NCBI GenBank assembly: GCA_964057225.1
Contig: OZ059896.1
Coordinates: forward strand, 14,260,001-14,324,000
Reading direction: 5' to 3'
Length of the DNA stretch: 64,000 bases
Origin: Auanema rhodensis
Lineage: Eukaryota; Animalia; Nematoda
The notes under the pieces are model-generated. The model was not told the DNA's origin, made no database searches, and saw only the letters and a list, made by a program, of their open reading frames with translations. The position numbers and the translations under genes are program-made. Numbering within the stretch: position 1 is the stretch's first letter; every line of letters begins with the position of its first letter. Positions 34,387-40,650 of the stretch are shown piece by piece.

Positions 34387-35385
34387 ATGTCTTTTGGGGA
34401 AGGCCTTTCCGGAGCAGAATATCTTGCTTCCATTTATGGAACGGAGAAAGATAAAGTTAATTGCTCCTTCTTTTTCAAAGTAAGTTTGTGGTTACAAAAT
34501 GGATATAATATTTTTTGGTAGACGGGAGCTTGTCGTCACGGGGAGAAATGTTCTAGAACCCATCACATTCCAACTTTCTCTCCTACCGTTTTATTAAAAA
34601 ATTTTTACCATAATCCTGTGGTCGACGTCCGGCAAGCAGATGCCTTTGACAGTAAGTATTTTTGCTTCAATTTTATTTTAAAATAAGTCATTCAGAGGTT
34701 GGCCAGCGAAATGCTGAGGAACAAAAATATTTCGATGAATTTTATGAAGAAGTATTCAGTGAAATGGAAAGACGAGTATAATTATATGTTCACTTAATGT
34801 TAAATTCTTTAATTTTCTCTTAGTATGGTGAAGTTGAAGAGATCAATGTTTGTGAAAATATTGGTGAACACATGGTCGGCAACGTATATGTAAAGTTTAG
34901 ACGGGAAGAAGATGCTGAACGTGCTATGAAAGAACTTAACGATCGCTGGTAAGATTTCCACTTTTTATTCTTCTATGTTGTTTTTAGGTTTAACGGTGCA
35001 CCTATCTACGCAGAATTATGTCCTGTAACAGATTTTCGTGAATCACGTTGTAGGCAGCACGAAGTTATTACATGCTCCAAAGGAGGTTTTTGTAATTTCA
35101 TGCATCTCAAAGCAATCAGTCCTGAATTGGGAGAGAAATTATATGGTCGTAGAGGAAGACGGTTAGTTTGGTTCGGGATATTTTTTATTTAAATCCATTT
35201 TCAGAGCTGATTCCGCCGGTCATTATCCGTCCATGAGAAGAGGTGGAGGAGGTGGAGGAGGAGGAGGCGGCGGAGGTGGAGGTGGAGATCGAGACCGTCG
35301 TCGTGGTGGTGATAGAGGTGGAGGAGGTGGAGGAGGCGGTCGTTACGACAGACGTAGAAGCCGATCTCGTGACCGTCGTTATTAA
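34387..35385 (+). CDS. uaf-2: U2AF small subunit (U2AF35)
   Basis: [34 protein letters not shown] (ZnF1), UHM domain, CRQHE...GGFCNFMH (ZnF2), Gly-rich/RS tail. Confidence 0.98.
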
Positions 35386-35525: not shown

Positions 35526-36818
35526 ATGCAATCAAATTTTCCACACAACAGGAAACGCACACTATATGTTGGTGGTTTTGGTGAGGAAGTGACCGAAAAG
35601 GTACGTGGTCAGTATCCTCATCATTATATTGCAATTTTTCATCAAGGTCTTAATGGCTGCGTTTATACCGTTTGGAGAAGTTGTTGCTATTTCCATTCCC
35701 ATGGATTACGAATCGGGTAAACACAGAGGTTTTGGGTATGTTAACTTAACAATTTTCTAGTGTTTCTTTTTTGTATAGGTTTGTAGAATTTGAACTGGCT
35801 GAAGATGCTGCGGCTGCTATTGATAATATGAATGATAGTGAACTGTATGGAAGAACTGTTAGGTATTTATGATTTGAATTTGGTTTTGTTAGTATGTATT
35901 ATAGATGTAACTTCGCAAGACCACCTAAAGCAACAGAAAGATCTTCGCGTCCAGTATGGGCTGACGATGAATGGTTGAAAACGTATGGAAAAGGAAGCGG
36001 AATGGCTGATGATGGCGCTATGGATGATGATAATTCTGCCGACGTCTCTTCTAAATTGCCCAGAGTTTACTTAGGAGTGAAGATAGGAATAAGGTAATAA
36101 CTATTCTACATATAGAATTCAAGATGATGCTTATAGATATATTGGAAGAATTGTTATAGAATTACGATCAGATGTTTGTCCCAAAACGGCCGAAAATTTC
36201 CGTTGCTTATGTACAGGAGAGAAAGGTTTTGGATTTGAAGGTATAACATTATTTTCCTAACTGCATTAAAAAGTTCTCTCCCAGGATCTACATTCCACAG
36301 AATTATCCCAAAATTCATGATTCAAGGAGGTGATTTTACTAAAGGTGATGGAACAGGAGGAAAATCTATCTATGGTCCCAAATTTGAAGACGAGAACTTT
36401 ACAGTAATTTCTAATGATACAGTTTCGTGTTATGTGCTTCTTTCTAGCTGAAACATGTTATGCCCGGAACAGTTTCTATGGCTAACTGTGGACCCAATAC
36501 TAACGGATCTCAATTCTTTATTTGTACAGAAAAAACCGAATGGCTTGATAACAAACATGTAGTTTTTGGTCATGTTGTTGAAGGTATGCACATTGTAAGA
36601 CAAGTCGAACAACAGGTAATTCTTTGCCTTCCGATCTTTATTAATTTGAATGATAGGGTACCCCAAGTGGTAAACCTCAAATGGTTATAAAAGTCGTCGA
36701 TTGCGGTGAAATTCTAACAGAGCGACGAGCTGCTCCCCCTAAAGCTTCAGAAGAAACGGAAGGATCCAAAGAAGATGTGATATCTTCGGCACCCATTATT
36801 GTTGAATCAACAGCTTAA
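35526..36818 (+). CDS. cyn-13: RRM-cyclophilin (cyclophilin E/PPIE)
   Basis: N-terminal RRM (TLYVGG, HRGFGFVEF) plus cyclophilin domain ([40 protein letters not shown]). Confidence 0.97.
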
Positions 36819-36958
36819 TTATTCAGATCGTTTTATTGTTTCAATATATGGATCTCTATTCGTGTTATATATATATATTCTTTGGTTTAGACCAATAATA
36901 TCTCATCTACTTTGAAAAAATATATACTTGTATACTGTATCCGTAAGCTTGACTTTAG

Positions 36959-39732
36959 ATGAGCAGCAAAACTGGCGGTAACACCGAGCCGATGCCATTT
37001 GTACGTAAATGGGGAAGTGGAGCTACAATGCCCTCAGATGAAGTAGCAGGCCCACCACCACCACCTAATTGTATATTAATTCTTTTGAAAACATAGCATG
37101 TAAATTTATTGCAGATGCTCCTGAGAAGTACGAAGAGCGTCGCGAGAGAAGCAAATCTAAGTCAAGAACTCCATCACGTTCTCGTTCACGTTCACGCGAA
37201 AAGGAACGTGATCGTGATAGAGATCGGGATCGTGACCGTGACAGGGATCGTGACCGCAAGCGTGATAGGGACCGTGATAGAAGACGCCGCTCTCGATCTA
37301 GATCCAGAGATCGTAAAAGGCGCTCCCGTTCCAGAGACCGTAGTAGAAGATCACGCTCAAGATCCCGTGATAGAAAAAGGTTTGATCCAGTTGAGAGCTC
37401 TGCTATGCGAATTTTTTTCAGAGATCGTTCACCTGACCCCCTACCTGCTACGGTGGCACCAAAGGAGCCAATTATTAACCCATTGATTCGTGAAGATATT
37501 GGTATTAATTTTTAACTCAATTTTTTGAATTCTCACTTCTTCCTTTTGCAGCTAAAGAAATGTCGGGAGAGAAGCCTGTTGATGCTGCTGCTATGGAAAG
37601 AAAACGCGAACGCAAAAGTCGATGGTCACAGAACAAGAGTTTTGTGCCAGGAATGCCAACTATTCTCCCTTCCAATCTTACTGATGAACAGAGGAGTGCA
37701 TATTTACGTGAGTGTCTGTTTATTTATTTTGAAAAAGTGATTTCATCCTTATAAGCAGGTGAGTAAGGTAAGTTTTTTTCTTTTTCTCTGTTTGTTATCA
37801 CTTCGTTTACTTTTTTATGTTTTACATTTCTAATTATGAACACGGCTTTGCCGTGCTTTTCAGTTCAACTGGAAATTGAAGATGCTACAAGAAAACTCCG
37901 TCTTGGTGATTTTTCGGGACCTACGGATCCTGCGGAGAGGCTAGTTAATATCACTTTTCAGATTGACACTGCGGTTTCTTTTTATTTTATATGATTAGAT
38001 AGGGTGTTTTTGTGAATAATTTAGATTTTAGTGCTGCGCATTATATAAATTTCAAATTACTTAACCATAATCGTTGTTTAGCCTTTAGAAACAGATCCTA
38101 TGATTAGTTGGAACAAAAATATGTGGAATGCTGAATGCTTCTATTATATTTATATATATATTTTTTTATTTCAGCTAATAGCATTTTTAGTTTTAATTTA
38201 TTAGCTTCAGATTAAAATACTGATTGCGGATTAAATTTAGTTTAGCAGTATAAATTAAAAATCAAAAAAAAAAGTGTTCAGATTTTTTATTACTTATCGA
38301 TTTCAGAAGTCCATCTCCGGAACCAATCTATGACAGTAATGGTAAAAGATTGAATACTCGAGAAGTTCGTAAGAGACAGGAATTGGAACAGCTCCGTCAC
38401 GAGAAAATTCAAGCTTTATTGAAAATTAATCCTAGTTTCAAGCCTCCTACTGACTACAGGTTTACATTTTATTTTTTTTATTTTAATTTGTATATGTTTT
38501 CAGAGCACCAAATATTAGACTTCACGATAAAGTTTGGATTCCTCAAGAACATCATCCGGAGATTAATTTCGTGGGTTTACTTATTGGTCCCCGTGGTAAC
38601 ACTCTTAAAAGTCTTGAAATGGAAACTGGTGCTAAGATTATTATTAGGTTTAGTAATATATAATTATTGTGTTACCTTTTACATTTTGTAGAGGAAAAGG
38701 GTCTGTCAAAGAAGGTAAACTTGGAAGTAGAATGGGGCCTTTACCCGGTGAAAACGAACCACTGCATGCCTACGTGACTGCCACTGATCAAGCTACAATT
38801 AAGAGAGCATGTGAAAAGGTAATTCTAGTTTTTTTCCACAGTTTTTAAAGAGATTTTCTCAGATTCGACAAATTATTGCGGAAGCTACAAACATTCCTGA
38901 TGGACAAAACGAATTAAGAAAACTTCAACTTCGAGAATTGGCATTGTTGAATGGAACTCTTAGACCTGAAGATCTCGCTGCCAGTACCCGGTGTTCGAAT
39001 TGTGGTTCTGATGAACATAAGACATGGGAATGTCCTGATGCACCTAATATCACAGCCAAAATTATTTGCGCTAATTGCGGAGGTATCATTTAAACGTATT
39101 TCTCATAATTTACGTCTGATTTATAGCTGCTGGCCATCTTACTCGTGATTGTAAAACACCCAGACCTGACGGAGAAATGGGAGCTGCTATCATGGATGAC
39201 GAATATTCAGCTTTAATGGAAGAACTTGGCGAAAAACCAAAGGGAGCCAATGGCGCATTTGGACTTGGAAGAGTTAGTCCAGATTTACCTATTTTATTTT
39301 GTATTTTTCTCTTAGGGAGCCTTCCCTCCTGCAAGAGGTGGATTTGGTGGAGCTGGCAGAGGATTTGATGGTATGCCCCCACCATTCCCTGGATTCATGC
39401 CACCACCGGAGTTCCAACCTGGATATTTCCCTACTCCTACTCCACCAATGCGTGGACGAGGAACTAGTACAGCTGCTTCCAGCGCTCCCGCTGGTCCAAC
39501 AAGTGCAGCCGCAGCCGCCGCAGCTTACAGTAGAGGGTAAGTAGAAGTTTCTTTTGTACGAAACATTAACATGAATTCTTCCAGATGGTATCCCGGATCT
39601 TCTCCACTACCAGTACCTCCTCCACCGCTTCCAGGAGTTGGAGTTGTACCACCTCCTCCACCACCACCACCACCACAGCCTGATTTGTCTAAATTGTTAG
39701 CTCCTGCTCCTCCTCCCCCTCCTCCACAGTGA
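36959..39732 (+). CDS. sfa-1: Splicing factor 1 / branch-point binding protein
   Basis: N-terminal RD/RS domain, [27 protein letters not shown]2 ([27 protein letters not shown]), two zinc knuckles and a Pro-rich tail. Confidence 0.98.
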
Positions 39733-40599
39733 TTCCATTATTATCTCATCTATAAAGTTATAACTTTGAATCCAATTTTTCGTTCTATGTGAACGCGTTT
39801 GTTGTATTTGTTGCTCTTATTTAATCATTTATAATAAATGTTTCCGCATTATCTCTTTTTGCACTTATTCTTAATCTTTCATCAAGAAATTACAAACAAG
39901 AAAATCGGCACAAGTGAAACACATGACAGCAATGACTGTTACTTCTTGTTTAAAGAAGCGTTGAACAGAGACCAAAATAATATTATAGTTACATTTTTTT
40001 CCAATTTAATATAATACATGTATTAGTACAATAAATTATAGGACATATAGTGTATAGTATGTATTATTTCAATTCAAAAATCAAGGTACTACATAAGCCT
40101 ATAAGATATTGTCTTATTCTCTCTATAACTATATTTTCAACTCATTTCAATTATTAATTATATCATTTACAAATTAATAAGCCATCAATTCTTTCTAAGT
40201 TTCAATGACCTGGATTAGGCAATTATAGCATTCATTGTTTCTTCGAATAATAGGAATTATTCTGATAATTGGTTTGTAACAGGTGTGACTTGTACTCAGA
40301 ATTCCGAAATTAATCATTTCGGATCAAATAAGATTTCTGGTTCATAAAAATACAATTTGTTCTAGCTTAATGTAGCTTAATGTCTACTTGTAATTTTATA
40401 ATTTTAAACATTTTTTGTACCTAAATCAGAAACTATTTTCAATCTTGTCATTCATATAATAAAGGTAATATTTCTTTTCTTCAAATTTAGCTCTAATATT
40501 AATATTAGTAGTAGTAAGTAGTAGTAGTAATAGTACTCGCAATAGTATTAGTAAGTGATTGATATTAAGTTCTCTATCTCTCTACTCCCCACCCTCTCT

Positions 40600-40602
<3 letters not shown>

Positions 40603-40650
<48 letters not shown>
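40603..40650. repeat. (TC)n microsatellite
   Basis: Uninterrupted TC run. Confidence 0.95.

Follow-up and report, generated by a model that had tools for sequence, protein, structure and literature searches.

SF1, a branch-point-binding protein and core spliceosome-assembly factor, matters through its dosage for the longevity of Caenorhabditis elegans. This dosage also affects 3′ splice-site choice in that worm (PMC2762039). The C. elegans gene, sfa-1, is already known to undergo alternative splicing coupled to nonsense-mediated decay (NMD) (PMC13247117, 2026), as structured or decoy-bearing introns are already known from splicing-factor genes. That 2026 study of non-triplet splicing lists sfa-1 among the NMD-sensitive cassette exons validated by reverse transcription PCR (RT-PCR). 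The event, IV_-_17108034_17108479_17108552_17108782, is a 73-nucleotide (nt) cassette between one intron of about 229 nt and another of about 445 nt. For this event, smg-1 gives a change in percent spliced in (dPSI) of −0.37 (p 1e-43) and smg-2 one of −0.36 (p 1e-67). Since both values are negative, it is the skipped form that is subject to NMD, and the exon is what that source calls an "essential exon" (PMC13247117). Here the sfa-1 orthologue of Auanema rhodensis is described, within a window of 64,000 nt (contig OZ059896.1 of assembly GCA_964057225.1, positions 14,260,001 to 14,324,000 of the forward strand; coordinates below count from the first letter of this window), with intron 4, the intron upstream of the corresponding exon, as its subject.

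On balance, intron 4 appears to act in cis as a conserved regulatory module of unproductive splicing, one that sets the level of productive sfa-1 messenger RNA (mRNA). What seems new is a hairpin that covaries beside a branch-site consensus in the gene for SF1 itself, together with a lineage-specific tandem donor decoy; a literature search returned no paper describing cis-elements in sfa-1 intron 4 or autoregulation of SF1 through its own branch site.

Exon 5 and the retention of intron 4

On the plus strand, the sfa-1 orthologue occupies 36959 to about 39733. Spliced contigs from four public RNA runs (X1 to X4, from one study and listed as "RNA?") fix its exon–intron structure, and the transcript evidence throughout consists of such assembled contigs, which lose rare and transient RNA forms. 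About 70% of the sampled words were present in the runs, in line with the portion of the region that is exonic, and the contigs skip each of the 11 sfa-1 introns precisely. A first-pass annotation of the window had singled out intron 4 (37708–37863) as some three times longer than the norm, and for this gene that is right: nine of the ten other introns measure 42–50 nt, against 156 nt for intron 4, and the tenth, intron 5, is with 367 nt the longest of all. Exon 5 sits between these, the gene's only two long introns. On direct reading, the tandem donors, CTAAT, and hairpin lie where that annotation had placed them, and frame arithmetic, with exon 4 ending in phase 1 (..TTA C), agrees that a 9-nt insert between the two donors would read C/GT GAG TAA, an in-frame stop. 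The features that matter here are these, in order.

37552 to 37707, plus strand: exon 4, with the ULM motif SRWS and the start of the SF1 helix-hairpin domain (junctions 37501/37552 and 37707/37864; translation)
37708 to 37863, plus strand: intron 4, 156 nt, GT-AG, GTGAGT...CTTTTCAG (junction 37707/37864 in four of four runs)
37756 to 37764, plus strand: internal donor-like motif 1, CAG/GTGAGT, matching the U1-complementary consensus at 9/9 positions (G at +3 allowed)
37765 to 37773, plus strand: internal donor-like motif 2, AAG/GTAAGT, in tandem with motif 1 (8/9 consensus match)
37774 to 37829, plus strand: T-rich, pyrimidine-rich stretch that separates the donor pair from the branch-site motif (read directly)
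37830 to 37834, plus strand: CTAAT, resembling the branch-site consensus, 34 nt before the intron end; SF1 or a different STAR/KH protein may bind here
37841 to 37855, plus strand: hairpin CACGGC-UUU-GCCGUG, a perfect stem that ends 8 nt before the 3′ end of the intron
37856 to 37863, plus strand: acceptor CTTTTCAG of intron 4, at the border with exon 5 (junction in all runs)
37864 to 37939, plus strand: exon 5, 76 nt (RNA-contig junctions)
37940 to 38306, plus strand: intron 5, 367 nt, GC-AG, donor AG/GCTAGT (the joint 37937/38305 can be shifted by 2 to give GC..AG)
38307 to 38459, plus strand: exon 6, with the SPSP motif and the start of the KH-QUA2 region (junctions; translation)

The RT-PCR primers of the C. 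elegans study encode PGMPTIL, which falls in window exon 4, and KRQELEQ, which falls in window exon 6 (PMC13247117). From these positions and the event coordinates, the C. elegans cassette is the orthologue of window exon 5, and intron 4 therefore lies directly upstream of an exon already documented as a switch for unproductive splicing. Window exon 5, like its 73-nt counterpart in Caenorhabditis nigoni, is not a multiple of three; by frame arithmetic its skipping shifts the frame and produces a stop 15 codons into exon 6. The same arithmetic yields a premature stop from every other alternative outcome, be it retention of intron 4, use of either internal donor, or inclusion of the 9-nt insert. 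Splicing from an internal donor would lengthen exon 4 by 51 nt or 60 nt, in both cases taking in an in-frame TAA at 37751-53.

Intron 4 is removed in one step, with 37707 joined to 37864 in contigs of all four runs. In X1 and X2 it is also present unspliced, in a 216-nt unitig (37678–37893) that covers the whole intron and 30 nt of the adjoining exon on each side. The depth of this unitig is 14.4 versus 32.6 for the junction unitig in X1 and 9.0 versus 24.6 in X2, a retained share of the retained-plus-spliced depth of about 31% and 27%, respectively. This unitig is absent from X3 and X4, where the spliced contig accounts for all the depth in intron 4. Intron 5, for its part, is found unspliced in all four runs (425-nt contig, 37910–38334, depths 5–16, retained 6–29%), and the ratio of intron 4 to intron 5 retention is about 1.6 in X1 and X2 versus about 0 in X3 and X4, a pattern suggesting that retention of intron 4 differs between samples. 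Contamination with genomic DNA was considered as a source of the retention contigs and rejected: neither the short introns nor a bin downstream of the gene carried extra depth (downstream depth 0), so the contigs very probably derive from RNA. Among the short introns, intron 2 (37380–37421) is 42 nt long, a multiple of three, and has no in-frame stop, such that its retention would preserve the reading frame; no retention of it was seen in the RNA contigs.

Orthologues were gathered with exon 4 alone, by a word search and a representative search, with taxa taken from source names, and exon 5 donors and intron 5 were surveyed in ten of the resulting loci (L001, L003, L005–L010, L014, and L016). 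The exon 5 donor is weak in most of these nematodes (GTTCAT, GTTCGC, GTTATT, GTTTGC, GTTTGA; GC in the window), and almost all of them have a long intron 5, about 190–800 nt, including those with a short intron 4. GC donors have been reported to be enriched among alternatively spliced genes (PMC2490688). Strong exon 5 donors occur in C. nigoni and L010, and in C. nigoni the acceptor is weak (ACATTACAG).

The branch-site motif and its hairpin

The position of intron 4, in phase 1 after ..YL, is common to all nematode loci obtained via exon 4 (L001–L009 and L013–L016); L011, a metagenome contig of uncertain origin, has no intron there, and a JGI metagenome scan for more orthologues gave three loci, none of them close. 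Window exon 4 is 64–81% identical to nematode SF1 fragments and is nearest to those of strongylids (Cylicostephanus goldi, 81%; Teladorsagia circumcincta, 76%), and the N-terminus of the protein is Caenorhabditis-like. The length of intron 4 varies widely among the loci.

L003, L005, and L007 to L009: 41–74 nt
L006 and L010: about 260 nt
L016, C. nigoni: 247 nt
L014, C. auriculariae: 490 nt
L001/L002, spirurid-like, with exons matching Gongylonema/Syphacia-type proteins: 497 nt
L015, T. circumcincta: more than 240 nt (the contig ends within the intron)
L013, C. goldi: more than 460 nt (the contig ends within the intron)

Despite the variation in length, one layout of the 3′ end is common to three lineages, represented by the window, C. 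nigoni, and L001.

Window: TTTCTAATTATGAA-CACGGC-UUU-GCCGUG-CTTTTCAG
C. nigoni: TTTACTAATTTC-UGGGCC-UUU-GGCCCA-ACATTACAG
L001: GAACTAATGA-ACGGGG-(8 nt)-CCCCGU-AACCACCTATTTCAG

CTAAT lies at −34 in the window and at −32 in C. nigoni. In L001 it lies at −42, with the stem close behind it (CTAAT-GA-ACGGGG). In the window and C. nigoni, a 6-bp stem with a UUU loop occupies −23 to −9 and −24 to −10, respectively. The window hairpin has a minimum free energy of −9.1 kcal/mol, an energy that shuffled versions of the 36 nt preceding the acceptor attain in just 0.7% of cases (P = 0.007), and the C. nigoni hairpin reaches the same P of 0.007 against shuffles. The whole-intron fold of window intron 4 has z = −2.25. 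When the two 15-nt stems are laid side by side ungapped, all six pairs form in both, and four of the six have changed on both sides, where slid controls pair at 25–40%; this count is confined to the window and C. nigoni, MAFFT misplacing the hairpins. The occurrence of the same layout with different stems in Rhabditina and in a spirurid-like worm, as read from their introns, is hard to ascribe to chance. Within sfa-1, a CTAAY within 100 nt of the 3′ end is confined to intron 4 among the 11 introns.

The hexamer TGAACA/TGAACG stands directly after CTAAT in the window (37837–37842) and in L001 (3639–3644), and is one of few blocks shared by the introns of C. goldi (L013, about 995) and T. circumcincta (L015, about 1421). 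T-rich tracts like that of the window follow donor-like motifs in T. circumcincta, L001, and C. nigoni. In L007, the intron 4 of 46 nt (375–420) has no hairpin, but ACTAAC, a perfect branch site of the yeast type, stands 22 nt ahead of its AG. Sequence-level homology between the intron of the window and that of L001 was rejected, as 29 of 500 shuffles scored as well as their local alignment.

A plausible working of this 3′ end can be outlined. The CTAAT-hairpin-UUUUCAG unit would set the recognition of the exon 5 acceptor by SF1 and U2AF, in that the folded stem would shorten the spacing between branch site and AG from about 30 to about 15 nt and so place a branch-site consensus beside the U2AF site. 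To our knowledge, nematode introns normally have no branch-site consensus; because the gene encodes the very protein that binds branch sites, SFA-1 would be the likeliest sensor, reading a consensus branch site in its own precursor mRNA (pre-mRNA), in a feedback that could take either sign. More specifically, and tentatively, it is possible that SFA-1/SF1 senses itself through the branch site and hairpin upstream of this frame-critical exon, and that the tandem U1 decoy described below adds a detained-intron layer in the strongylid-related lineage.

Tandem donor motifs and rival explanations

The second component of intron 4 is its pair of internal donors. The 9-mer MAGGTRAGT has three copies on the plus strand of the 64-kb window, and two of them lie in intron 4, spaced 9 nt apart. 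Shuffles of the intron contain at least one AGGTRAGT with a probability of 0.003 and at least two with a probability of 5e-6. Both motifs outscore every donor in the gene, including the authentic intron 4 donor AC/GTGAGT. They are identical to each other at 7/9 positions, and the pair could have arisen by a 9-nt duplication. Intron 4 of every locus was scanned for matches to the U1-complementary consensus CAG/GTRAGT at a minimum of 7/9 positions, and pairs were found as follows, each with the P of finding that number of sites.

Window: donor sites 52 and 61 nt into the intron (P 0.0055)
T. circumcincta (L015): donor sites 95 and 109 nt into the intron (P 0.02)
C. goldi (L013): donor sites 103 and 117 nt into the intron (P 0.07)

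The introns of the two strongylids are otherwise unalignable, and the best-kept part of them is precisely the block GGTAAGT-N7-CAGGTAYGT, identical at 16/21 positions. Neither strongylid motif has an upstream pyrimidine tract, and one site has no AG (TTG/GTAAGT). Given this non-acceptor-like context, the conserved element would be a U1-type donor motif rather than an AG/GT ratchet point. The simplest reading of the AG in the window is accordingly that it represents donor positions −2/−1, selection apparently keeping two U1-type sites and not a 3′/5′ composite. Such sites might bind the U1 small nuclear ribonucleoprotein (snRNP) as decoys and stall excision of intron 4, leading to its retention. 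Alternatively, they may be used occasionally as poison donors, whose products NMD would remove.

The latter alternative, taken as a full account, holds that both internal motifs are real poison 5′ splice sites paired with the acceptor at 37863 and that the resulting mRNAs are lost to NMD. The strength of the motifs relative to all other donors of the gene, the stop that follows from both extensions, and the persistence of the pair in two strongylids all speak for it, and in C. elegans, splicing-factor genes commonly have alternative 5′ sites coupled to NMD (PMC13247117). Set against this are the absence of any such junction from the contigs of the four runs, the lack of a strong internal donor in either Caenorhabditis species, and, among the supplementary entries listed in that same source, the fact that the only event found for C. 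elegans sfa-1 is the cassette (PMC13247117). Overall, we regard this account as unlikely.

The 3′-end module might also be read by factors other than SFA-1. CTAAY is bound by other STAR proteins of the ASD-2/GLD-1 class, and such a protein, for instance ASD-2, could act on CTAAT, or U2AF could respond, one of its subunits being encoded by uaf-2 in the same operon; the hairpin would then only space the branch site from the AG, as yeast hairpins are known to shorten that distance. Congruent with this possibility, the conserved intronic splicing-regulator hexamers that lie close to alternative exons of C. elegans include CTAACC (PMC1500816). That the gene of the branch-site-binding protein should itself contain a consensus branch site is, on the other hand, suggestive of self-reading, and cross-regulation of this kind seems quite unlikely as the explanation.

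A third account denies the intron any regulatory role: the donors would be a neutral 9-nt duplication, the hairpin a chance or tolerated structure, and the retained form ordinary pre-mRNA. The 7/9 identity of the two 9-mers, the non-significant alignment of window and L001, the modest z of the whole-intron fold, and the several nematodes that do without a long intron 4 would all fit. It leaves unexplained, however, the branch-site–hairpin layout kept in place with compensatory changes, the donor pair kept in strongylids, the shift in the ratio of intron 4 to intron 5 retention between runs, and the adjoining exon being a documented NMD switch. We consider it improbable.

The first-pass annotation itself had proposed a two-step removal of the intron via a recursive AG/GT at 37758/37759, entered through the internal acceptor 37756–37758, with use of the second donor (37768) leaving a 9-nt stop microexon, GTGAGTAAG, as a feedback on SF1. 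An AG/GT with two perfect donors does exist, the insert has the frame described, the first segment of 51 nt has the length of a normal intron of this gene, and CAG/GT also occurs within the long intron 4 of L001, L013, L015, L016, and L010; yet the mechanism is very improbable, for no acceptor of the gene has a poorer context than the internal one, TAAGCAG (1/4 pyrimidines at −7 to −4 versus 2–4/4 in all 11 real acceptors), the donor half alone is conserved, a full-text literature search found no paper reporting recursive splicing in C. elegans or other nematodes, and the contigs of the four runs, from which rare forms may drop out, contain neither the insert nor junctions 37707/37759, 37758/37864, or 37767/37864. 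Recursive sites known so far lie in very long introns. The RNA check that the annotation had suggested, as carried out on contigs, thus came back empty for its two junctions and the insert, and the proposed mechanism is weakened, not refuted. Its conservation check gave a mixed answer: the hairpin covaries (four of six pairs in C. nigoni) and the donor motifs recur, but AG/GT is not kept as a unit.

Several observations weigh against intron 4 as a conserved regulatory module and have to be set beside those that favor it. Retention is seen in only two of the four runs, and assemblers may handle bubbles and minor paths differently depending on depth. Neither exon 5 skipping (37707/38307) nor internal donor use was found in the assembled contigs of this one study, in which NMD was presumably active. 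The hairpin and CTAAT are absent from C. auriculariae, L006, and L010, and the five species with an intron 4 of 41–74 nt have no room for them; each element is found in three lineages only, and the covariation rests on few sequences. The donor pair, and indeed any strong internal donor, is absent from both Caenorhabditis species scanned, and since Caenorhabditis has the documented NMD event, the pair is not needed for that event. Lastly, binding of SF1 at CTAAT is itself a prediction, CTAAY not being specific to SF1 and other STAR proteins being candidates as well. Even so, one half of what the annotation had concluded, that the intron serves as a switch on SF1 dosage, very probably stands, given that the intron adjoins an NMD-coupled exon, is retained in two of four runs, and carries elements with counterparts in other nematodes; its other half, the two-step mechanism, is unsupported.

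Operon context and known systems

Two genes precede sfa-1 on the same strand of the window, between 34357 and 36818: a U2AF35/uaf-2-like gene at about 34.4–35.4 kb and a gene for a cyclophilin with an RRM at about 35.5–36.8 kb. The former carries AEYLASIYGTEKDKVNCSFFFK and encodes a Gly/RS tail at 35233–35385. The latter is cyn-13-like and ends at 36818, leaving a gap of only about 140 nt to the sfa-1 ATG. The order uaf-2, cyclophilin, sfa-1 agrees with that of the C. elegans operon (PMC2762039). At 40585–40650, downstream of the sfa-1 3′ end, lies a microsatellite, (CT)n, some 60 nt long, preceded by (AGT)n-like repeats at 40505–40545. A hidden RNA gene or repeat in the introns was considered and rejected: an Rfam search of 36800–40000 turned up nothing at E < 0.1, and none of the intron's 16-mers is repeated in the window.

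If the proposed circuit is real, it would constitute a direct and ancient (Rhabditina–Spirurina) autoregulatory loop of the branch-point-binding protein, and intron 4 would be a rare nematode intron that depends on a recognizable branch site. A branch-site consensus, a covarying hairpin, and putative decoy donors within 110 nt offer a testable handle on the balance of a core spliceosome-assembly factor. The locus also illustrates that recursive splicing does not follow from the mere presence of an AG/GT in a small intron.

Among the systems with which intron 4 can be compared, the closest is the C. elegans sfa-1 cassette. The two share the gene and its uaf-2/cyn-13/sfa-1 operon, the non-triplet exon, two unusually long flanking introns, and a premature stop upon skipping. 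They differ in that the accessible part of the C. elegans study reports the event without cis-elements (PMC13247117), in that skipping is absent from the window contigs, and in that the window has a GC donor after exon 5 and a tandem donor pair before it, neither of which occurs in the sampled Caenorhabditis species.

A second relative is decoy-exon control, as in SF3B1 intron 4 and OGT (PMC6097662, PMC12017769). As there, the window has a splicing-factor gene with a partly retained intron, inside which lie conserved, unused consensus splice-site motifs: the retained share is substantial in X1 and X2, and the 9/9 and 8/9 sites, found at P 0.0055, are unused and kept in strongylids. Those introns, however, are kilobases long and their decoys are full cryptic exons, while the "decoy" of the window would measure 0–9 nt within 156 nt, its acceptor half is poor, and its binding by U1 and U2AF is putative.

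The ratchet points of Drosophila and vertebrates resemble the window in having an acceptor-like AG that abuts a consensus donor, here CAG/GTGAGT. They reside in introns of tens of kilobases rather than 156 nt, and they juxtapose functional 3′ and 5′ sites in the form Y-tract-NCAG/GTRAGT. The window instead presents the acceptor context CCTTATAAGCAG, with 1/4 pyrimidines, no strong pyrimidine tract, and no intermediate junction among its contigs. Its relatives conserve the donor half only, the strongylid counterparts not keeping AG/GT and pyrimidine tract as a unit.

Stem-loops between the branch site and the 3′ splice site of yeast introns, finally, shorten the effective distance between the two. 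In the window, a stable stem likewise separates a consensus branch site from the AG, and folding would reduce the spacing to a similar effect, from about 30 to about 15 nt. What sets it apart from the yeast cases is its setting: the nematode gene for SF1 itself, directly upstream of a regulated exon, where a branch-site consensus is normally absent.

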